This document shows, piece after piece, positions 6,064 to 49,720 of a stretch of 64,000 bases of DNA (positions are counted from its first letter, which is position 1; each line of letters starts with the position of its first letter). The notes beneath the pieces were generated by a model. It worked only from the letters and a program-made list of their open reading frames with translations. It was not told the DNA's origin and ran no database searches. The stretch lies in the sequence record MT028491.1, one strand, 5' to 3'. Both the position numbers and the translations under genes were made by a program.

Positions 6064-6072
6064 TGTTTATAT

Positions 6073-6106
6073 AAAGAAAAAGAGGGGTTTTTACCCCTCT
6101 TTTTTT
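6073..6106. terminator. intrinsic terminator, potentially bidirectional
   Basis: AGAGGGG-TTTTTA-CCCCTCT flanked by an A-tract and a T-tract. Confidence 0.75.
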
Positions 6107-6381
6107 ATTGTATCTGCCGTTTTAACATCACAAGACAGATTGATAAAATCTACTGTGTCAGATAGAGAAATGCCCTTGACCTTATACAGTTCATTGGCAA
6201 TCTGTTTGGCCTTTTCACAACGCTCAATTTTTACTTGTTCAAGCGAAGCGCGTTCTTGTTTGATATTGTGAATGTAGATCACAAATATGGCCACCAAAAC
6301 GCTAAAAATAATGCCACCAATAACGTTCAAGAACCAAGAGAACATACGCCCTCTATTTTGAGGTTTTTGTTTGGATGTCAT
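6091..6381 (-). CDS. hypothetical membrane protein
   Basis: One N-terminal TM segment followed by a charged helix; SD upstream. Confidence 0.55.
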   Translation of the reverse strand: MTSKQKPQNRGRMFSWFLNVIGGIIFSVLVAIFVIYIHNIKQERASLEQVKIERCEKAKQIANELYKVKGISLSDTVDFINLSCDVKTADTIKKEG

Positions 6382-6438
6382 TTGTTCCTTCCGAATGATT
6401 ATAGGTTATACCCCATACCCATAATCTTATTTATCGTT

Positions 6439-6597
6439 TTACCAGCCCAAAGATCGCATGTATATTGCCACAAACATGATAATTGCGGCTAATATCATCC
6501 AAATAGTTTGAATAATATTACCCTTTATTGATGGGCTATCAGCAACAATTGTTCCAAACAACAATAATGCGCCCATGATAAATGCAATCCAAGTCAT
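6439..6597 (-). CDS. small 2-TM membrane protein (52 aa)
   Basis: Translated by hand as MTWIAFIMGALLLFGTIVADSPSIKGNIIQTIWMILAAIIMFVAIYMRSLGW*; ATG overlaps the upstream stop. Confidence 0.5.
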   Translation of the reverse strand: MTWIAFIMGALLLFGTIVADSPSIKGNIIQTIWMILAAIIMFVAIYMRSLGW

Positions 6598-6812
6598 TTA
6601 TACAATCCCATTATTCCACCAATGCAGACTAAAGTAACCAACATGAATAGAGTGATCACGGTTGATAGAATCAATCCAACAGATGTAGTTGACATAGCAA
6701 ACATGCCTATGCTCCAAACAGCATAGGCCAATCCGATAAGAATCATAACAACAATTTTCATTTTATGATTAGTCAAATCATAGTTCTCCAATTCCACCAT
6801 AGAGTGAGCCAT
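6594..6812 (-). CDS. small 2-TM membrane protein
   Basis: Two hydrophobic segments; tightly packed in the operon; start uncertain. Confidence 0.5.
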   Translation of the reverse strand: MAHSMVELENYDLTNHKMKIVVMILIGLAYAVWSIGMFAMSTTSVGLILSTVITLFMLVTLVCIGGIMGLYK

Positions 6813-7014
6813 CCTTTTGATCCACTCGAAAAATTTCTACATAATCGGCCTTGTGCATAAGCTTCCAATCCATGGCCAGATTATATGCGTGGTCAAAATC
6901 ATCTGCCGAAAGTTCGCTTTCTCCACACCATGTGCGAATACGAACTACAAACGGAAGATCATAATCGGTTCCGTTGATGATTTCCAAACGATCTTCATTG
7001 GTTGCAAAAGCCAT
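6778..7014 (-). CDS. hypothetical protein
   Basis: ORF in a packed - strand operon. Confidence 0.55.
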   Translation of the reverse strand: MAFATNEDRLEIINGTDYDLPFVVRIRTWCGESELSADDFDHAYNLAMDWKLMHKADYVEIFRVDQKDGSLYGGIGEL

Positions 7015-7017
7015 TGC

Positions 7018-7248
7018 TCAAGCCTTTCTTACGATATCGTTGAAGCTTTCCGTACCAGCATACAGACGACCAGACTTATGCCAGCTTTCACTAACACCAC
7101 CAGCATTGTAGAAGCCGTGGCAACCCATATCATGCTTTGTGCTTACGATTGTCACCGTAACAACATCGCCGCAACGGGTAACATATTCACCAGATTCATC
7201 AATAACAACAGGAAGGGAAACCAGTGGGAGAAAGTAAGCTTTTGCCAT
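7018..7248 (-). CDS. hypothetical protein
   Basis: First ORF after the promoter at about 7290-7315; SD AAAGG. Confidence 0.6.
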   Translation of the reverse strand: MAKAYFLPLVSLPVVIDESGEYVTRCGDVVTVTIVSTKHDMGCHGFYNAGGVSESWHKSGRLYAGTESFNDIVRKA

Positions 7249-7286
7249 GTCCGTAACCTTTATGTTAGGTCGTTTTCGATGATTAA

Positions 7287-7354
7287 TATCTATATTAGTT
7301 TAAATGTTAAGTCAACACCTAAAAACAAAAAAAGAGGCCGTTAAGCCTCTTTTT
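7287..7354 (-). promoter_or_regulatory. terminator-plus-early-promoter cassette, copy 1
   Basis: On the - strand: hairpin AGAGGC-TTAACG-GCCTCT, then TTTTTTGTTTTTAGGTG-TTGACT-17nt-TAGATA; near-identical to 29456-29516. Confidence 0.7.
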
Positions 7355-7355
7355 C

Positions 7356-7829
7356 TCATTTTTCTTTCCACTGGTGTTTACGATAGCGTTTCCAGTTGTT
7401 ATTACCAACCGTTGAACACAGAATATCATCCCAAGAATTAGGAAGCTTGCGGCGCTTTCCACGTGTATATTCATCCACGCGAGAACGTTCTTGCTTCGTT
7501 TTCATCTTGGTACGATAATAATTACCAAAACGCCATTTTGCACAACTAATGCCCTCTACAGGACCATCACGAAACTTATAACGCTTTACATAAATCTGAT
7601 TCATACGCTTCTGCCAACGCTTATGAATTTCAGCATTATACTGTTCGTATGCCACTTTCATTTCATAAGGCTGGACATAAACACCATCCTCAAAAACCAA
7701 AACTCGATTGTCGTTTACTTTAATACAACCATCGAAAGTCACTGTTCTATAGGCCCAAAAGCGCATAAGTTCTTGAAAGGTTTCAAAAAACTGGCGAGTG
7801 CCATAGAACGTATTAATCACCTTATACAT
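7356..7829 (-). CDS. hypothetical protein
   Basis: 157 aa basic ORF ending WK..RK.QWK, a common phage hypothetical type. Confidence 0.6.
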   Translation of the reverse strand: MYKVINTFYGTRQFFETFQELMRFWAYRTVTFDGCIKVNDNRVLVFEDGVYVQPYEMKVAYEQYNAEIHKRWQKRMNQIYVKRYKFRDGPVEGISCAKWRFGNYYRTKMKTKQERSRVDEYTRGKRRKLPNSWDDILCSTVGNNNWKRYRKHQWKEK

Positions 7830-7899
7830 TTATTCCTCTTCTAAGCAAGTTGATTACTTAAAAGAATTGCATCCTGATAAACATATATGTTTCCTTTCT

Positions 7900-7983
7900 T
7901 TAGTGTGGAATGCCGATCCAGAGTCCAACAAAGGGAATCGTGAAAGCGGCTGACATCATCAAGATAGCGTAAAACTTAGACAT
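7900..7983 (-). CDS. hydrophobic mini-protein (27 aa)
   Basis: MSKFYAILMMSAAFTIPFVGLWIGIPH*; follows a promoter-like TTGCCA-17nt-TATAAG with SD TAAGG. Confidence 0.4.
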   Translation of the reverse strand: MSKFYAILMMSAAFTIPFVGLWIGIPH

Positions 7984-8031
7984 TTGTAAAGACCTTATGT
8001 TTGTCTTGTTTCGATGACTAAGCTTATACAT

Positions 8032-8166
8032 TCACTTTGAATTTCTGGCAACTAAACACCAAAAACATGATAAACAAATCCCTAATATCAATGGCGACCA
8101 ATCCCATAATGCGAGAGACAAGATAGCCGATACTAGTAAAGTGAATGCCACTTCGTAAATGATCAC
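8032..8166 (-). CDS. small membrane protein (44 aa)
   Basis: GTG start after SD AGGAG; MIIYEVAFTLLVSAILSLALWDWSPLILGICLSCFWCLVARNSK*. Confidence 0.5.
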   Translation of the reverse strand: MIIYEVAFTLLVSAILSLALWDWSPLILGICLSCFWCLVARNSK

Positions 8167-8177
8167 GGTATTCTCCT

Positions 8178-8205
8178 AAAAGAAAAGAGGGACCGAAGCC
8201 CCTCT
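8178..8205 (-). terminator. intrinsic terminator after gp32
   Basis: AGAGGGGC-TTCG-GTCCCTCT-TTTCTTTT; core identical to 31266-31290. Confidence 0.85.
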
Positions 8206-19401: not shown

Positions 19402-19741
19402 GATAATTTTCCTTCTTAACCATGCTTTCAATAGGGTCCATACCATTGCGAAGAATCGATTCTCCACCGTCTACATATTCAATTATACCGTAATTGTAGC
19501 CGATGTAACGAACAACAAATTCTTCATCACCCCATAAAATTACTGTTTCTGTTCCAGCGTATTTTTCCAATTCTTCCCAAGTCATAGGCTTAACCTTTTC
19601 CCAAGAAACGTTAAGAGAACCACGAATAACGGAAATCTCTTCACCATCAGAACCTTCAAGAATGGCATAAGATTTGCTTGTTGCTACAAGCTTGTATGGG
19701 TTATGAGGTTCATTTGAATTAGTGTAGTACGTTTCACTCAT
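19394..19741 (-). CDS. hypothetical protein
   Basis: Operon ORF. Confidence 0.55.
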   Translation of the reverse strand: MSETYYTNSNEPHNPYKLVATSKSYAILEGSDGEEISVIRGSLNVSWEKVKPMTWEELEKYAGTETVILWGDEEFVVRYIGYNYGIIEYVDGGESILRNGMDPIESMVKKENYRG

Positions 19742-20172: not shown

Positions 20173-20688
20173 TTATGTATTAGGATTAATTGCGCGCCTA
20201 ATAGCTTCTTCAATCGTAATGGCATGATAGCCGATACTATCAACACCAACATCAATTCCGCATACACCTAAAGGATAGTCAACCTTAGCACCATGCACGT
20301 GTCCATGAATATTGACTTCACAAATACCGGTTTCGGTAACTGGATAATGCGTGAAAAGAATACCCGGCTCAATCTCTAATGAGTCGCGAATGTCTGTCCA
20401 ACCCATTGCTTCCATTTTGGATCGCGGATCATGATTCCCCTTGATCATAATCTTTTCGCCGTTCAACTGATCAAAGATTGGCTGAATCAATTCTGGTTTC
20501 AAGCAAAAAGTGAAATCTCCCCCGAAAATAACCACATCATCAGGCGCGATAGACTCATTCCATGCACGAATCAGAAACACATTCATCGTGTCAACAGAGT
20601 CAAAAGGTCTATTGCAATACCTAATAATGTTGGTGTGGAAGAAATGGGTATCTGCCAACGTCTTTGCTTTTAACCAGTTCATTTCCAA
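20173..20688 (-). CDS. calcineurin-like metallophosphoesterase
   Basis: ADTHFFH, GGDF, KGNHD, THYP, NIHGHVH. Confidence 0.92.
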   Translation of the reverse strand: MEMNWLKAKTLADTHFFHTNIIRYCNRPFDSVDTMNVFLIRAWNESIAPDDVVIFGGDFTFCLKPELIQPIFDQLNGEKIMIKGNHDPRSKMEAMGWTDIRDSLEIEPGILFTHYPVTETGICEVNIHGHVHGAKVDYPLGVCGIDVGVDSIGYHAITIEEAIRRAINPNT

Positions 20689-21074
20689 TCCCTATATCTA
20701 TTTTTTGGCTTGTCTTCTTTCTTCTTCTCACCAAAATTGGTTGCGATTCCTATGAATGTTCCAATCAGAACAATTGTAGAAATAATAACCACAATACCAA
20801 TTGCAGCATCAGTTTTAGGTGGTTCTGGTGGCTTTTCAGGCAACCATGCATTCCAATTCAAGTGATGAACCAGTGTTTTGGTATTGGTCAGATATTTAAG
20901 TTCGGCTTCTGTCTTACGACAAAACTTTTCTTCAACCGGTTTTTGACGAACGTATTGTTCCATCATTTGATTTTCGAAGAATTTACTCTTTTCTTCATCA
21001 ATACGAAATGAATCTTGTGTTCCGTTTGGACGTGTGATGACGATATAAACACCCGGATTGAAGAGATTATTCAA
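20679..21074 (-). CDS. hypothetical membrane-anchored protein
   Basis: One C-terminal TM segment. Confidence 0.5.
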   Translation of the reverse strand: MNNLFNPGVYIVITRPNGTQDSFRIDEEKSKFFENQMMEQYVRQKPVEEKFCRKTEAELKYLTNTKTLVHHLNWNAWLPEKPPEPPKTDAAIGIVVIISTIVLIGTFIGIATNFGEKKKEDKPKNRYRDWK

Positions 21075-29422: not shown

Positions 29423-29455
29423 AAACCCTTACTGGTTTGTTGACTTGATGACTAA

Positions 29456-29516
29456 CTTTTAGATTAAACTAATTCCTATGTCAACACCTAAAAACAAAAA
29501 AGAGGCCGAAGCCTCT
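29456..29516 (-). promoter_or_regulatory. terminator-plus-early-promoter cassette, copy 2
   Basis: AGAGGC-TTCG-GCCTCT-TTTTTGTTTTTAGGTG-TTGACA-17nt-TAAAAG; shares about 30 nt with 7311-7340. Confidence 0.72.
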
Positions 29517-29947
29517 TAAATATTTTTAAAATCTCTTTTCTCTTGCCATGGTGTTTCATTATGAATTTCTTCTGCAACACCACCAAATCGACTTTCAAAC
29601 TCTTCACTCATTTGATGTCGTCTATTCACATCAATAGGAATACCAAGCCGCTCACATTCTGCCCTACTGAGAACACGAACATCATAATTAATATCTCTAT
29701 GACGAAGTTTGTATTCGCCAAACAAAATCTTGTCTTCTGAATATCCTAGGCCTGTTTCAATATAATAATGTCTGACAACAATCATATCATTAAAAGGATA
29801 GGTTTCGCCTGTAGGAAAGGTAAACTTCTTTCTACCGTTGGCGTTAGATAGCTCTTGTTCCAGCTTCTTTTTTTCAGCTAATAGCTTATTAATTTTTGCT
29901 TCATTTTCTGCAATCTTCTTTTCAATTGCAGTTACGGCTTTACTCAT
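29516..29947 (-). CDS. hypothetical protein with N-terminal coiled coil
   Basis: Heptad-like N-terminus. Confidence 0.55.
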   Translation of the reverse strand: MSKAVTAIEKKIAENEAKINKLLAEKKKLEQELSNANGRKKFTFPTGETYPFNDMIVVRHYYIETGLGYSEDKILFGEYKLRHRDINYDVRVLSRAECERLGIPIDVNRRHQMSEEFESRFGGVAEEIHNETPWQEKRDFKNI

Positions 29948-30162
29948 TTTTTAGGTCTTCCCCTCTTTCGGACAAGAGACAATTTTCCCTCATCTTCCAT
30001 CTTGTTCATAATTTCTTCTGGACACCACATTTCTTGATTGTCTTTCTCACGTACACAAAGCCATTCGATTCGGCCTTTCATACGTTTGTTCTTTCTGGTT
30101 GCTTTGATCAAATAGACAGTACCATTTGCATCTTTGATTTTTTCAGAAATCGCCAGAATCAT
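29944..30162 (-). CDS. hypothetical basic protein
   Basis: Ends in the AT-hook-like KRGRPKK. Confidence 0.55.
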   Translation of the reverse strand: MILAISEKIKDANGTVYLIKATRKNKRMKGRIEWLCVREKDNQEMWCPEEIMNKMEDEGKLSLVRKRGRPKK

Positions 30163-30355
30163 TGTTGATATCCTCTATCAGTCTGTCAAATTCGTTCTCA
30201 CGCATAATTCTACAAACTTTATGACAAGCATAAATTTGTTCCTTGCAATGGTTACTAGGTTTAGATGAACGATTGAGTATATCACGAACTTTACGAAAAT
30301 GATTTAATACCTGTCTGGCTTCATCTAATGAACCAGCTTCTACTATGATATCCAT
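30143..30355 (-). CDS. hypothetical protein
   Basis: Overlapping operon ORF. Confidence 0.5.
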   Translation of the reverse strand: MDIIVEAGSLDEARQVLNHFRKVRDILNRSSKPSNHCKEQIYACHKVCRIMRENEFDRLIEDINNDSGDF

Positions 30356-30558
30356 TTTTCTCTAATAACTTTCATCGCAACAGTGGAACTATTGCCCACG
30401 TATCCAGATTCATGTTTTGGTGGATATAAGGCATATTTAATTCTATTCACCTTACCGTACATAGACAGTGCTTTTTTATGATATATGGATGTATATGGAT
30501 ATCGTACAAAGATGATTTCCAAATGATTCAATAGATCATCAATTTCTTGTTCTGTCAT
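30343..30558 (-). CDS. hypothetical protein
   Basis: Overlapping operon ORF. Confidence 0.5.
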   Translation of the reverse strand: MTEQEIDDLLNHLEIIFVRYPYTSIYHKKALSMYGKVNRIKYALYPPKHESGYVGNSSTVAMKVIREKWIS

Positions 30559-30872
30559 TAAGTAATCACTGACATTTCAACCTTGACAATGACACCATTT
30601 GTTACATTTTTGACATGCTTTCTAGCGTTATCAAGATTATAAAAATGATCGATAGGGTGATGAATGCCGCAATGATCAACAGAGTTGACAGCATATAACG
30701 GTCGTTTGTTCATTTCATCATGTGCCGCCACAAGCTGTTCTGGATTATTAGTTGACAGGTTTTCATAGACTTCTGCGAGTCTGTCTCTTAGTTCTTGAGG
30801 ATATGACTCTAGATCGGCTCTTAGGTCTTCCATCTGTTTAATAATGGATTTGTATTCTTCAATTAGAGTCAA
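30558..30872 (-). CDS. hypothetical protein
   Basis: Overlapping operon ORF. Confidence 0.5.
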   Translation of the reverse strand: MTLIEEYKSIIKQMEDLRADLESYPQELRDRLAEVYENLSTNNPEQLVAAHDEMNKRPLYAVNSVDHCGIHHPIDHFYNLDNARKHVKNVTNGVIVKVEMSVIT

Positions 30873-31203
30873 TATGCACTTCCTTCATCGTCACACAGAA
30901 TACCTTGTTGTTGGGATTTTTATCAGCTTTGATATATTCCAAAGCGTTCTTTTTGGAAAAGAAACGTTGACCAACCATCATAGCCCAATGTCGGTTCTCA
31001 CCAATAACATAAATTTTTCTTGAAAAGAAATCTCCAATGTATTGACGATCTTCAAAAGAACAATTCGTTATAAGATCGTCAAAAATTTTTTCAAGTTCAT
31101 TGATTTTTGAAAACAAATTTCTATCAGCCAAATAAGCAATATCAAGCTTTTCAATTTGATTCTTGATCTTCTTAATTTTTTTAATTCGTTGTTCAAGTTC
31201 CAT
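30859..31203 (-). CDS. hypothetical protein
   Basis: SD GGAG; layout similar to 30558-30872 (helical N-terminus, F.....NA..Y). Confidence 0.5.
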   Translation of the reverse strand: MELEQRIKKIKKIKNQIEKLDIAYLADRNLFSKINELEKIFDDLITNCSFEDRQYIGDFFSRKIYVIGENRHWAMMVGQRFFSKKNALEYIKADKNPNNKVFCVTMKEVHIDSN

Positions 31204-31265
31204 ATCAATATCTCCATAACAAATAAAACACCATTAGCCTAACATATCGTTTATTAAAAAGCAAT

Positions 31266-31290
31266 AAAAAAGAGGGACCGAAGCCCCTCT
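31266..31290 (-). terminator. intrinsic terminator after NAMPT
   Basis: AGAGGGGC-TTCG-GTCCCTCT-TTTTT. Confidence 0.85.
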
Positions 31291-40905: not shown

Positions 40906-41081
40906 TATTTACGGCTTAGATAGAGCGCGTACCAACAAGATTCTTCTACTGGTTTACGTTTCGTATAATCGCACTCTGTCAACACCTTTTCTAATTCTTC
41001 GGTTGTAATAATTTCACAACCTTCTAGCGGCAACTCCCCATGTTGACAACCCTTTTATGTCAAAAAGTTAACAAAAAATTT

Positions 41082-41113
41082 AAAATAAAAGAGGGGATTT
41101 CTCCCCTCTTTTT
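41082..41113 (-). terminator. intrinsic terminator after the endolysin
   Basis: AGAGGGGA-GAAA-TCCCCTCT-TTTATTTT. Confidence 0.8.
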
Positions 41114-43818: not shown

Positions 43819-45222
43819 TTAAGCCGCAATCTTGTATCGATCATCCATCAGGGTCTTAGTGATGACCTTGATTGGATCAATCTCACCACCCAAGAGATTC
43901 TTGAGAATGGAAGGACTGAAACCGGAAACAAGAGCCGTGCCATTCGTATCAAATTCCACAGGGGAACCAACCGATGCACGAAGATTCCAGAAAATGATAC
44001 CCGGCATTTCATAACCAGCATCATTAAACTTCTTTGTCCAACGCTGATACATCGTTGCATCAGTGCCACCAGACACACACCTATCAAACTGCATATCCGA
44101 AAAGATAATGAGTTTGTTTGGAAGGTCTGATTGAGGAACTGCATTTTGAACCGCATGATCCAATACCAGCTTGAAAGCCTTATCGATATCAGTATTCATA
44201 GCCCAATCGCGATCCATACCATGGACAAAATGCTTTCGATCAAGAATGGTATTACCAGCTACCTTGATCAACCTTGGATTTCCTGAGAACGTAAGAACGT
44301 AATCCTTGAAAGCCGACTTGTTGCGTTCGGAACAATAAAGACCAAGTGCAACAGAAACTTCCATCGGAACACCAGACATAGAACCAGAAACATCACACAT
44401 TGGAAGGAAACTAGTGTTTTCCGTGATGTAGTTTGGCAACGCCTTCCACTGTGCATCCATGACGCCAGCATTAGCACCCCTTAGAACATCATGAGGGAAG
44501 ATCGCACCAGCATTGACCTTTGCACCAGAATCCGGCTTGGAAAGAGCGGCAATCCATTCACGATAACGCTCACCATCATTACGATGAAACGCCTTCTGGT
44601 AGTTCTTTGCGGCAACAGAAGGAATATGATTGTAATCAATCGCATCCCATTCCTTGGCACACATCTTGGTTTCAACCACATTCGTAAGTTCCACAAGGGT
44701 CTTACGATAGGTCTTTGGATTCATACCAAGATACTTGCGAAGTGCAATAGCTTGTGCACCCTTGCGAGGCATCCACTTTGCACAAAGACCATCCTTGGCT
44801 TCCAAGGCTTCCTTGATTACCGGCATTGCCGCTTCAAAGACCTTATCACCAGAATGAAGAACATCATCCCAACGGCCCATTTCGACCATCTTGCGAATAA
44901 CCACATCAGGAGTCACCCCATGATCGGCAACGATTCGTTCAAAAAAAGTATTCATAAGGCGACGGCCCATAGCGCGTTCACCAGCACCTTCACGAACATC
45001 ACGACCATAAAGCACAAGGCGAGCAAACATTTGTGGATCGCTAATATATGCAGTTTCGGCAAGCTTCATAAAGCTACCAACCGACTGGCGAGAAGCGCCA
45101 ATACGGAAAAATGCATCTACCATATACTTACCAGAAGTATCTAGAGTTGCATCACCATTTTCCGTAACGGTACGACCAACCGAGACATCAGCACCGTTAA
45201 GCGAAGATACAAACTTATTCAT
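43819..45222 (-). CDS. TROVE-like / vWA domain protein (DUF2828 type)
   Basis: TENG...TSG...VD.FF, RDVREGAGER, GRWDD, LCAKWMPR, VNAGAIFPH; vWA MIDAS CDVSGSM, TD..KAF..VL, IFSDMQFD, FWNL, SGFSP. Confidence 0.88.
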   Translation of the reverse strand: MNKFVSSLNGADVSVGRTVTENGDATLDTSGKYMVDAFFRIGASRQSVGSFMKLAETAYISDPQMFARLVLYGRDVREGAGERAMGRRLMNTFFERIVADHGVTPDVVIRKMVEMGRWDDVLHSGDKVFEAAMPVIKEALEAKDGLCAKWMPRKGAQAIALRKYLGMNPKTYRKTLVELTNVVETKMCAKEWDAIDYNHIPSVAAKNYQKAFHRNDGERYREWIAALSKPDSGAKVNAGAIFPHDVLRGANAGVMDAQWKALPNYITENTSFLPMCDVSGSMSGVPMEVSVALGLYCSERNKSAFKDYVLTFSGNPRLIKVAGNTILDRKHFVHGMDRDWAMNTDIDKAFKLVLDHAVQNAVPQSDLPNKLIIFSDMQFDRCVSGGTDATMYQRWTKKFNDAGYEMPGIIFWNLRASVGSPVEFDTNGTALVSGFSPSILKNLLGGEIDPIKVITKTLMDDRYKIAA

Positions 45223-46934: not shown

Positions 46935-47388
46935 TTCCGAATTTCAAACATATTTTTCTGATAAACTCTTTCTCATAATCATCAAACTCAATTTTGCTCG
47001 AATGGATTCTGGACAGAACAAAAGACAGATATAATGCAGGATAATGCGCTATCGTTTGGATATCTTTATTCAAATTTTTGGCGAAAAACCCCGGAAAATG
47101 TAAAAGGGTACAGCTTGGAAAAAGTGTTGGATTATTCACGTAAAAATAAAGTCTTTCGGAATATACCATTTCCAAATTCATAAGAGCGTCACTTAGTAAA
47201 TCAGCATAGTTGCGCGAACCCCAAAAATATTTAAGGGTATTATACAATCTAATAAATTCTTGTGGTTCAATCTCCATCAAACATTTAGCTAGGAAATTGT
47301 TCATTTTAGTGGAAAATAAAACACATTCCAAATTTTCAAGCGTATTGTCGAAATTATCCCGACGCCTTCTAGCATTCATATTTCTCAA
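46918..47388 (-). CDS. hypothetical protein (AT-rich island)
   Basis: ORF. Confidence 0.5.
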   Translation of the reverse strand: MRNMNARRRRDNFDNTLENLECVLFSTKMNNFLAKCLMEIEPQEFIRLYNTLKYFWGSRNYADLLSDALMNLEMVYSERLYFYVNNPTLFPSCTLLHFPGFFAKNLNKDIQTIAHYPALYLSFVLSRIHSSKIEFDDYEKEFIRKICLKFGNEVNV

Positions 47389-47486
47389 AAAATAATTCCC
47401 TAATATCCTAGAATCAAAAAGGCTAAGACAAACATTAATCTTAACGTCTATCTTAGCCTAATTTTCATGCAATGTCGAATCAAAAG

Positions 47487-47759
47487 TTACTTCGATTTGC
47501 AATAAGCCCTCCACACGCTAAAAGCTGGCATCTGGTAATTCATGGGATCACCCTTAACAGTGATGCTTTCATATGGATCGCCATTCATCCAAACCTTACG
47601 GTTTTTACAATTGACAATAGCAGTGAATTTCACACCACTATATTCAGACAGAACCATATCACCACGATCCGTCTTTTTGATGAATTCGGGTTTAGTTGCA
47701 GCCATTGCCGAAGTTACAGCAAGAGCCATTACAACACCAAGTACGAGTTTCTTGATCAT
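47487..47759 (-). CDS. small exported protein
   Basis: Signal peptide MIKKLVLGVVMALAVTSAMAA; two Cys. Confidence 0.6.
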   Translation of the reverse strand: MIKKLVLGVVMALAVTSAMAATKPEFIKKTDRGDMVLSEYSGVKFTAIVNCKNRKVWMNGDPYESITVKGDPMNYQMPAFSVWRAYCKSK

Positions 47760-48133
47760 TTGACACCACCCTTACACGTAGCTCGCCAGACATTAAACAG
47801 GATATATTCCTTACCTGTGCGAAAACGAATGTTCTTGGTCTTGGCAGGAATTTCAAAAACCTTACCAGTTCCAGCATCGGTTACATATGCGCCATTATCG
47901 CCGCCACACATGATACGAACATTGAAGCCGTCTTTCTTGTTGCCTTCCCGAATAATTACGGTAGCATTGATTTGACCGTCTTCATCGTCTGGTTCGACAA
48001 ATGGATTGATAACAGCGTATTGTCCACATTTACCCTGCCAGCAAAGCTTGAAAGGTTGGGGATCGGTCATAGCAACAGCCGGAACCGAAACAGATGCAAA
48101 GGCCAAAGCCCCTAGAAAAAGTGCCATTTTCAT
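47756..48133 (-). CDS. small exported protein
   Basis: Signal peptide MKMALFLGALAFASVSVPAVA; SD AGGAGG; four Cys. Confidence 0.6.
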   Translation of the reverse strand: MKMALFLGALAFASVSVPAVAMTDPQPFKLCWQGKCGQYAVINPFVEPDDEDGQINATVIIREGNKKDGFNVRIMCGGDNGAYVTDAGTGKVFEIPAKTKNIRFRTGKEYILFNVWRATCKGGVK

Positions 48134-48280
48134 AACAAAACCTCCTATGGTTAGAATCACACTTACACCATAGGATATAGAAACCTTAAAAATCATGTCA
48201 ATACCTATTTTATGTCAAGCATTAAATTTTATGTAAGGTATTGATTTATATACATTTTATTTTATGTAATAATTCGTGAT

Positions 48281-48309
48281 TTGACTCTTCAAACAAGTTT
48301 TGCTAATAA
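48281..48309 (+). promoter_or_regulatory. plus-strand sigma70-type promoter with no downstream ORF
   Basis: TTGACT-17nt-TAATAA. Confidence 0.55.
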
Positions 48310-48310
48310 T

Positions 48311-48450
48311 GACAGCGTAGCTGTTCAAGAAAAACCTTTAGAGTCTGGTTTAAATATCCCTTAAAAAATTCAAATAGTTGAAGTTGTGTAGCAACACACC
48401 TGAAAGGTGTTCAATTAACATCCTTCGGATGTGCAAGCTTCGCTTGCTTA
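48311..48450 (+). ncRNA. candidate small structured RNA
   Basis: Hairpins GACAGC-GTA-GCTGTT, ACACC-TGAAA-GGTGT, ACATC-CTTCG-GATGT and GCAAG-CTTCG-CTTGC downstream of the + promoter. Confidence 0.5.
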
Positions 48451-48461
48451 ATTTAGATTCT

Positions 48462-48827
48462 TTAAATATAAATTTGAATCTGTAAAAGTTCTTTATAGAT
48501 ATAAAGCATATTGGATACATTACCTCTATAGTTATTGATAACTTTCAATAAATCATCGTCTTTTACTACAAAAGTAATATTTTCAATAGATTTAATTTCC
48601 TCTTCATGTTTCATGATACATGAAATCAAATAACTTGCATCTTCCAAATTCTTGAAACAACGGCCCATTACTTCCATTGTTTCTAAAGAAATAGGATCAA
48701 AAATTGTCGCCTGCCCATTCCCATTTTTGTAAGATTGGAAAACTGGTAGAACTTTCTTGTATGTGAAAACAAGACAGTTCAATTTTGCGTTTAAGGCACT
48801 CAATTCTTTTGATGGTACTCTTGACAT
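48462..48827 (-). CDS. hypothetical protein
   Basis: ORF; likely start MSRVPS. Confidence 0.45.
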   Translation of the reverse strand: MSRVPSKELSALNAKLNCLVFTYKKVLPVFQSYKNGNGQATIFDPISLETMEVMGRCFKNLEDASYLISCIMKHEEEIKSIENITFVVKDDDLLKVINNYRGNVSNMLYIYKELLQIQIYI

Positions 48828-49203
48828 TATTAAACCTTTCAACATCAGACATTTTTTCTAGATCGCTTTTTGTCTGGTTGTACAATAACCAATATTCTTT
48901 CGTTTTATTAAGTGTGCAATGTTCTGTGTCGTCAATCCATTCCTTGATGGTATGAAGCCTGTTTTCAAATGCTGATCTATTAATTTGAAGTAGACGAATT
49001 TCATTCGGTTTGTATGCCTCTTCCGGTGAAACTATTCCTCTTTGGGCATTAATGAACAAAAGATCATTGACGAGTGCACAACCAATCTCAAGAATCATGA
49101 TTGTGCTTCGACACGCATACTCGACTTTAGTTCTTTCTTTTAAACGAATCATACTGATAAAAGCCCATGTGAATAATTTCAAGAGTGCTATCGGGTATAT
49201 CAA
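48697..49203 (-). CDS. hypothetical protein
   Basis: ORF with large overlaps; boundaries uncertain. Confidence 0.45.
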   Translation of the reverse strand: MIYPIALLKLFTWAFISMIRLKERTKVEYACRSTIMILEIGCALVNDLLFINAQRGIVSPEEAYKPNEIRLLQINRSAFENRLHTIKEWIDDTEHCTLNKTKEYWLLYNQTKSDLEKMSDVERFNNVKSTIKRIECLKRKIELSCFHIQESSTSFPILQKWEWAGDNF

Positions 49204-49648: not shown

Positions 49649-49690
49649 AAACGATTTGCAAATTAGTATAATACTAATCTAATTTTAGCA

Positions 49691-49720
49691 ACAAAAAAAA
49701 GAGGCCGAAGCCTCTTTTTC
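49691..49720 (-). terminator. intrinsic terminator
   Basis: AGAGGC-TTCG-GCCTCT-TTTTTTT. Confidence 0.85.

Follow-up and report, generated by a model that had tools for sequence, protein, structure and literature searches.

The window analysed here, a stretch of 64,000 nucleotides, derives from the Ochrobactrum phage vB_OspM_OC (MT028491.1), a T4-like jumbo phage with a genome of 227,654 bp. Positions are given in window coordinates (record position minus 62,000) unless they are marked as record positions. In this window, a gap of about 330 bp separates p160 and p161, two genes of unknown function that are both located on the minus strand. While p161 occupies 48462-48845, p160 is annotated at 47756-48196 with a likely start near 48133. 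The gap harbors a real, unannotated element that spans 48281-48454 on the plus strand and is referred to as the unit in the following; neither the GenBank record nor the phage's paper carries an annotation at any of its loci. A divergent promoter of p160 (TTGACA-18-TATCCT, 10 of 12 consensus positions) lies on the minus strand at 48172-48201, its TTGACA starting at 48201, which confirms a minus-strand -35 box that had been noticed nearby. This promoter falls outside the repeated unit, beyond the region common to the paralogues described below.

Other structured elements of the window are found on the minus strand. The gap between p158 and p159 (47380-47490) contains an 18-bp perfect hairpin that is followed by a U run (z -3.9) and is probably a strong terminator. 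The repeat families D1, D2 and D6 (6069-8205, 29447-31290, 41078-41113 and 49690-49717) are composed of minus-strand terminator hairpins with UUCG-type loops. In some of these repeats a conserved promoter-like stretch comes after the hairpin, resulting in terminator-promoter cassettes between early genes that resemble the PeSLs discussed below.

The unit recurs in the genome. One paralogue is located at record positions 183640-183782 on the minus strand (83% identity, E 2.7e-35) and another at record positions 20625-20773 on the plus strand (76% identity, E 1.5e-22); they are called the 183.7-kb and the 20.6-kb copy. Searches with nhmmer and with a covariance model, R1, retrieved exactly three copies in the genome, all of them full length. 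Further matches were weaker echoes on the opposite strand, which arise because the hairpins are palindromic. The copies lie 65-90 kb apart on the 227.7-kb genome. The repeated stretch covers approximately 48262-48455, beginning just upstream of the -35 box and fading just past the last hairpin, H5, so that the limits of homology delineate the extent of one transcription unit.

At its 5' end, the unit carries a promoter that the first-pass annotation had read as TTGACT-17-TAATAA on the plus strand (48281-48309), and both boxes are present exactly there. The -35 hexamer TTGACT (48281-48286) is aligned with TTGCCT and TTGACA in the paralogues. It is followed after a 17-nt spacer by TAATAA (48304-48309), which together with the preceding TGn forms an extended -10 element (48301-48309). 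The 20.6-kb copy has a perfect TTGACA-17-TATAAT promoter without TGn and the 183.7-kb copy a TAAACA box with TGn, the extension being present in both copies with weaker -10 boxes. Single promoter-like matches are not above chance in the A+T-rich DNA of the window (6 found, 6.4 expected). The unit exceeds chance because it is recurrent, with two paralogues that keep the promoter hexamers and every hairpin. Only two matches to all 12 consensus positions exist in the 227-kb genome, and one of them is the promoter of the 20.6-kb copy; the other perfect TTGACA-17-TATAAT is found at record position 227411 on the minus strand. The spacer is 17 nt long in all three copies, yet its sequence is just 35-59% identical, while both hexamers are retained. 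Hexamers and spacing that are kept around a decayed spacer are a pattern typical of a working promoter.

Downstream of the promoter, five hairpins and an invariant segment could be delineated. H1 (48312-48324) has a 5-bp stem and a GTA loop; comparison of the three copies shows two-sided changes at four of the five pairs, with Watson-Crick pairing kept throughout. Directly after H1 comes a 30-nt A/U-rich core (48325-48354; 93-100% identity among the paralogues), which includes a GAGTC sequence, a GANTC site, at 48341-48345. Across the three copies no conserved pairing partner for the core was found, and folding predictions suggest that it is probably unpaired. The subsequent A-rich linker (48355-48382) is variable, measuring 28, 29 or 39 nt in the three copies of the alignment, and contains a weak AU-rich hairpin (48369-48382) that can form in all copies in a differing register. 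H2 (48383-48395) again combines a 5-bp stem with a GTA loop, which is GTA or GTAA in the paralogues; two of its pairs show two-sided changes, and a single G-T wobble occurs in the window copy. H3 (48396-48410) has a 6-bp stem and a GAA loop, and in the 20.6-kb copy its closing pair is changed from T-A to C-G and its loop is GTAA. A conserved 7-nt linker (48411-48417; 86-100% identity) leads to H4 (48418-48432), with a 6-bp stem and a TTC loop, from which one whole base pair is symmetrically absent in the 20.6-kb copy. H5 (stem-loop 48433-48447), also with a 6-bp stem and a TTC loop, gives the unit a terminator-like end together with a T-rich tail that extends to 48454 (93-100% identity). A terminator scan listed H5 and its tail as a plus-strand terminator; the U tail is weak. 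A second TAGANTC is located at 48456-48460, just beyond the unit.

Four of these hairpins, H1, H3, H4 and H5, had been noted before at these very places; the list was correct as far as it went and lacked H2. What did not hold is the geometry of 5-bp stems and 5-nt loops given for H3-H5. Stems of 6 bp with 3-nt loops are the better description because each 15-mer is a perfect palindrome, and UUCG is consequently out of register for a C(UUCG)G tetraloop. The notion of a DNA-level palindrome array with fixed spacing (ACAYC-N5-GRTGT) is contradicted by the paralogues, in which the spacing is N5, N6 or N3.

The loops alternate between GNA triloops and GNRA tetraloops among the copies. They are found on the plus strand for H1-H3 and, as GAA, on the minus strand for H4-H5; correspondingly, GCGAAGC or CCGAAGG is present on the plus strand in H1 and on the minus strand in H4-H5. 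The hairpins are also alike within copies, as H1 and H2 share a stem in the 20.6-kb copy and H1 matches H4 in the 183.7-kb copy. Through its inner 9 nt, H1 is complementary to H4 in the 183.7-kb copy and to H5 in the other two, perfectly in the 20.6-kb copy and at 8/9 positions in the window copy. In the minimum-energy fold of two copies, one long-range helix takes the place of two hairpins. By such folding predictions, the complementarity of H1 to H4 or H5 may represent a switch, or it may simply result from the likeness of the stems. A long-range stem closing the 5' and 3' ends was predicted for the window copy and was discarded, as it is not conserved in the paralogues.

Comparison of the three copies revealed that the stems pair in all of them, with seven positions changed on both sides and one symmetric deletion of a pair; the exceptions are one wobble and one terminal mismatch. 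Neighboring unpaired segments are only 35-67% identical, compared to 93-100% for the 30-nt core, and the indels between copies measure 1, 2 and 10-11 nt. All of this support comes from three paralogues, in which gene conversion or template switching within the palindromes could mimic selection. Coding potential was lacking. The only plus-strand reading frames in the unit start with TTG and comprise 27 and 35 amino acids; indels in the paralogues disrupt both of them, the copies have no frame in common, and no small ORF is conserved on either strand across the three copies, which bears out the initial impression of an ORF-less stretch. The plus strand folds more stably than shuffled sequences (z -3.9, 0/200), and for the minus strand the z value is -2.4. 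Alifold energies are -28.5 kcal/mol for the plus and -29.1 kcal/mol for the minus strand. Since the hairpins are palindromic, folding is equally possible on the plus strand, on the minus strand and in DNA, and wobble pairs as evidence for the strand amount to 1-3 versus 1.

The genomic surroundings differ from copy to copy. Two copies are antisense to both of their neighbors, one of them, the 20.6-kb copy, adjoining uvsY-uvsW. The 183.7-kb copy is located in a divergent gap upstream of the metallophosphatase gene p346, with which it is co-directional at a distance of 70 nt. No similarity was detected among the flanking proteins of the three copies, and there are no shared flanking genes and no mobile gene cassette. 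Position and orientation of the 183.7-kb copy would fit a cis-acting leader of p346, and the other two copies point at the 3' ends of p161 and p023, as expected if they acted by antisense pairing or interference against these converging genes. Such a role in cis is highly unlikely, given that the three contexts are mutually inconsistent, that the flanking proteins are unrelated and that the terminator-like H5 closes the unit ahead of the converging genes. Moreover, p346 has a -10-like TATAAT of its own between the element and its start codon, and in relatives the gap before the p346 homologue is filled by tRNA genes.

A repeated promoter-plus-hairpin cassette without a product of its own, PeSL-like in spirit and either regulatory or selfish, might insulate transcription units, drive or block local transcription, or spread by recombination. 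T4-type genomes contain repeated promoter/stem-loop cassettes (PeSLs) that mediate shuffling (Arbiol 2010; Comeau 2014, PMC4122927), and vB_OspM_OC has its own minus-strand terminator-promoter repeats D1, D2 and D6. Like a PeSL, the unit is a repeated intergenic module with a sigma-70-like early promoter and stem-loops in a T4-type genome. The mutual resemblance of the hairpins within a copy suggests duplication or conversion, and the 183.7-kb copy lies upstream of and co-directional with p346. The order of parts in a PeSL is stem-loop, early promoter, Shine-Dalgarno site and start codon (PMC4122927). In the unit this order is reversed: the promoter comes first and is followed by the hairpins, in about 140 nt of conserved non-coding sequence with no Shine-Dalgarno site, no start codon and no gene attached. 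Downstream genes are lacking altogether in two of the three copies, and the copy number is just three, all full length. Furthermore, a selfish or local element would not hold a 30-nt block at 93-100% identity while the promoter spacer decays to 35-59%. On balance, this cassette explanation is improbable.

Relatives of the unit were searched for at several levels. At the gathering threshold, Rfam 15 gave no match in the 64-kb window, and at 48250-48500 all matches were at chance level (E above 1; best E 1.2, to an unrelated family), so that the unit belongs to none of the families it holds. Exact 18/19-mers of the core matched 4, 7 and 8 times in IMG/VR, JGI metagenomes and GTDB genomes, respectively, all by chance and with unrelated flanks, and a two-block pattern search of large sequence collections returned no match. 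Two of the chance 19-mer matches, in the metagenome contigs L035 and L037, are situated in DNA that looks eukaryotic, possibly human, and contains a long A run. In the phage itself, a 16-mer with 15 positions identical to the core occurs at record positions 156201-156233 (minus strand) within the array of tRNA genes, flanked by tRNA-Met and a doubtful ORF of 31 codons; neither nhmmer nor duplex energy sets it apart from chance. The R1 model was run on five T4-like phages of Alphaproteobacteria and cyanobacteria (phiN3, phiM12, Cr30, HTVC008M and S-SKS1) and found no credible homologue in them. The best match, in Cr30 (26.9 bits), was rejected as it lies antisense within a coding gene, and those in phiN3 and phiM12 were rejected as their common ground is limited to generic GNA hairpins.

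The phage vB_OspM_OC is an orphan, whose large terminase shares about 44% identity with that of the nearest GenBank phages and whose UvsY relatives in IMG/VR reach at most 28% identity. Closer relatives were found in public assemblies (UvsY 61-65%, metallophosphatase 54-56% identity). In the former, the 76-92 nt upstream of uvsY gave no R1 match, and neither did the gap before the metallophosphatase gene in the latter; relatives of p161 were not found. In metallophosphatase relatives, tRNA genes occupy the place where vB_OspM_OC has its 183.7-kb copy (L071, 5830-6110; L072, 5960-6320). A strain of about 97% identity, retrieved from a 2023 public metagenome run, contains all three copies. Its window copy differs by 1 change and 1 indel in 198 nt of promoter and 5' half, compared to 2.5-4% change in most flanking coding pieces and 14% in one 152-nt piece; the contigs break at the repeat. 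The 20.6-kb copy of this strain shows one visible change, in the promoter spacer. Of four public runs, examined as contigs, the two labelled RNA-Seq were flagged as probably DNA; none spans the hairpins, and no evidence of a transcript was found in them. Conservation in relatives, on which the first-pass annotation had made its proposal depend, is hence divided: the close strain has all three copies and the element is missing at the syntenic loci of relatives with 54-65% protein identity. Judged from these searches, the family seems confined to the vB_OspM_OC lineage, and the informative comparison is the one between paralogues.

With a probability slightly better than even, we interpret the unit as a new, lineage-restricted family of small non-coding RNA genes with three paralogues. 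Its mosaic conservation in unrelated contexts points to an old, duplicated, stand-alone transcription unit that is selected for its promoter, its folds and its open segment. The generic features of a stand-alone small RNA gene, namely its own promoter, its own terminator, no ORF and compensatory structure change, are all found, the evidence coming from three paralogues only and the terminator having a weak U tail. The orientation of the copies, independent of their neighbors, also counts for an RNA gene. Counted against it are the position of H1 at the start site, the palindromes that fold on both strands, the mixed strands of the loops and the lack of a homologue in any other phage or metagenome searched. 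The structured plus-strand RNA of approximately 140 nt envisaged at the outset is thus the best-supported reading, because of the three paralogues, the homology that runs exactly from the promoter to the terminator-like hairpin and the compensatory stem changes. The roles that had been proposed along with it fared less well: nothing points to an antitoxin-like RNA or a sponge, and a partner of the TROVE/vWA protein is considered below.

Transcription of the unit, the ends of the transcript and its function are what we infer from the sequence. Transcription by the host sigma-70 RNA polymerase would probably fall early in infection, beginning at the promoter of the unit itself (-35 box from 48281, -10 box from 48304) and halting at the last hairpin and its U-rich tail (48433-48454), which would yield an RNA of about 135-140 nt. 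H1 starts 2-4 nt past the -10 hexamer in all copies (2 nt in the window copy), so near that a canonical start site (approximately 48314-48317) would fall inside its 5' arm or loop. The RNA would then hold just the inner 3-4 pairs of H1, the covarying pairs being the outer ones. The predicted transcript would thus begin with a short 5' stem, possibly these inner pairs alone, continue with the invariant, probably unpaired 30-nt segment (48325-48354) and the variable A-rich linker, and end in a compact block of four GC-rich hairpins, H2-H5. The invariant segment may serve as the working surface that binds a partner in trans, either a host or phage protein or a host RNA. The hairpin block H2-H5 may confer nuclease resistance and termination, and three dispersed copies with strong promoters might ensure a high dose. 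Antisense targets of the core in the phage were sought and discarded, since the best duplexes (-24.8 and -23.9 kcal/mol) compare with -22.3 to -24.1 kcal/mol for three shuffled cores. The duplex of -24.8 kcal/mol involves a 26-nt site in the uvsW coding region (record positions 19441-19466) and is taken as chance. As the core has no significant antisense target in the phage, its partner would be a protein or a host RNA.

One conceivable protein partner is encoded nearby. The gene p153 (43819-45222, minus strand) is annotated as Ro sixty-related, and Y RNA partners of Ro60 proteins are generally encoded close to them (Chen et al., 2014, PMC4201824). As a special case of an RNA gene, the unit could specify a Y-RNA-like molecule that tethers or gates the ring protein. 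The window copy lies 3.1 kb from p153, and the phage also has RNA ligase and kinase genes. There is no other Y-RNA candidate beside p153, as Rfam is blank and shuffled sequences fold as well as the small gaps on either side. Similar to the Y RNAs YrlA and YrlB, the predicted RNA is structured, non-coding and about 100-150 nt long, and its genome has a Ro60-related gene; two copies also have CGAAG, which resembles part of the Ro-binding motif, in the H1 loop close to their 5' end. The criteria for YrlA are a 5' GNCGAA(N0-1)G motif, stem-loops resembling T- and D-arms and a location within 4 kb of the Ro60 gene on the same strand (PMC4201824). GNCGAA(N)G is absent from all three copies, where H1 reads AGCGTAG (window), TCCGAAGG (183.7 kb) and AGCGAAG (20.6 kb); no copy has a G two bases before CGAA, and the window copy is devoid of CGAA. 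There are no tRNA-like T-/D-arm modules (ARAGORN found nothing in the window). The window copy, the only one less than 4 kb from p153, runs in the opposite direction, and 60-90 kb separate p153 from the other two. In addition, the 5'/3' closing stem of the window copy is not conserved, and the Pfam matches of p153 are DUF2828 and DUF7788, not the TROVE model. The suggested partnership with a TROVE/vWA protein therefore fails on motif, arms and same-strand adjacency. It is very improbable that the three-copy RNA is the partner of a divergent Ro60-like ring protein (DUF2828 plus vWA-like) and represents a new class of Y RNA without a tRNA-like domain. In that case, contact with the ring would be made by the invariant single-stranded 30-mer, with the hairpin block serving during infection to tether or gate an enzyme of RNA repair or decay.

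The main rival to a small RNA gene is a promoter-dependent signal at the DNA level, for which an origin of replication like T4 oriF, oriG or oriE is the most plausible candidate. It had been raised from the start as an origin-primer transcript, and it keeps its place as an alternative that we consider unlikely without dismissing it, the small RNA gene being preferred; the two are not exclusive. Transcription from the promoter would melt the A+T-rich stretch and leave an R-loop for priming. Mini-hairpins with GNA loops would form in the displaced strand and mark or stabilize the opened site, and the invariant core might be bound by a protein or sense methylation. Origin-dependent replication is expected for this T4-like phage by the authors of its paper. 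T4 oriF and oriG comprise about 100 bp with a promoter and an A+T-rich unwinding element, and oriE makes use of an early promoter (PMC3016281). The same layout is seen in all three copies, in which 58-69 nt of 69-74% A+T lie after the promoter, following H1. Three copies 65-90 kb apart, one of them beside uvsY-uvsW as is T4 oriF, also suit an origin, as do GNA loops on both strands and the location of H1 over the expected start site, which makes its compensatory evolution hard to place in an RNA. Finally, a GANTC site lies in the core of every copy, and a GANTC methylase of the phage was tested experimentally (PMC7139368).

Other observations speak against an origin. T4 origins have no common sequence motif, and R-loop formation needs no specific sequence (Kreuzer and Brister, PMC3016281), which leaves an invariant 30-nt block and five structure-conserved hairpins unexplained. 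The unit finishes in a terminator-like hairpin. Contrary to what is expected of an oriF equivalent, the element is absent beside uvsY in the relatives with 61-65% UvsY identity. GC skew tracks the gene strand and has no turning points at the three copies, and the density of GANTC sites in the genome is at chance (740 compared to 780 expected).

Small RNAs of lytic jumbo phages are almost unexplored. If the unit encodes an RNA, its 30-nt invariant segment points to a specific host or phage partner, and a new family would join the short list of phage regulatory RNAs. If it marks an origin, T4-like phages of Alphaproteobacteria and cyanobacteria would gain their first origin signal defined by sequence, in contrast to T4, whose origins have no motif in common. 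The value of either outcome is limited for now by the confinement of the element to one phage lineage, and its status as an RNA gene is a sequence-based prediction.

Among known systems, DNA mini-hairpins of the C-GNA-G type are unusually stable, as exemplified by the GNA triloop of d(GCGAAGC), and hairpin-based signals initiate replication on single strands, as in the complementary-strand origin of phage G4. The unit shares with them short hairpins in series that are closed by GC pairs and have GAA or GTA loops. Unlike signals of the G4 type, which belong to single-stranded DNA replicons, it resides in a double-stranded T4-like genome and has a conserved promoter. With T4 oriF, oriG and oriE it has in common the T4-like phage, the promoter followed by an A+T-rich stretch and the several dispersed sites. 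T4 origins have no conserved hairpin array and no terminator, whereas the unit has an invariant 30-nt block and five hairpins, and the likeness in build would appear to go only as far as a promoter followed by A+T-rich DNA. Short stand-alone phage transcripts such as lambda oop and trans-acting small RNAs of the Hfq type combine a stem at the 5' end with an open seed and a terminator hairpin at the 3' end. Like these, the unit carries a promoter of its own, measures about 140 nt and has a conserved open stretch set between structured ends, the last of them a terminator-like hairpin. It differs from them in its three copies, in an invariant segment far beyond the usual seed length, in a weak U tail and in that no target was found within the phage genome. 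Taken together, these comparisons suggest that the unit works most like a stand-alone phage small RNA gene.
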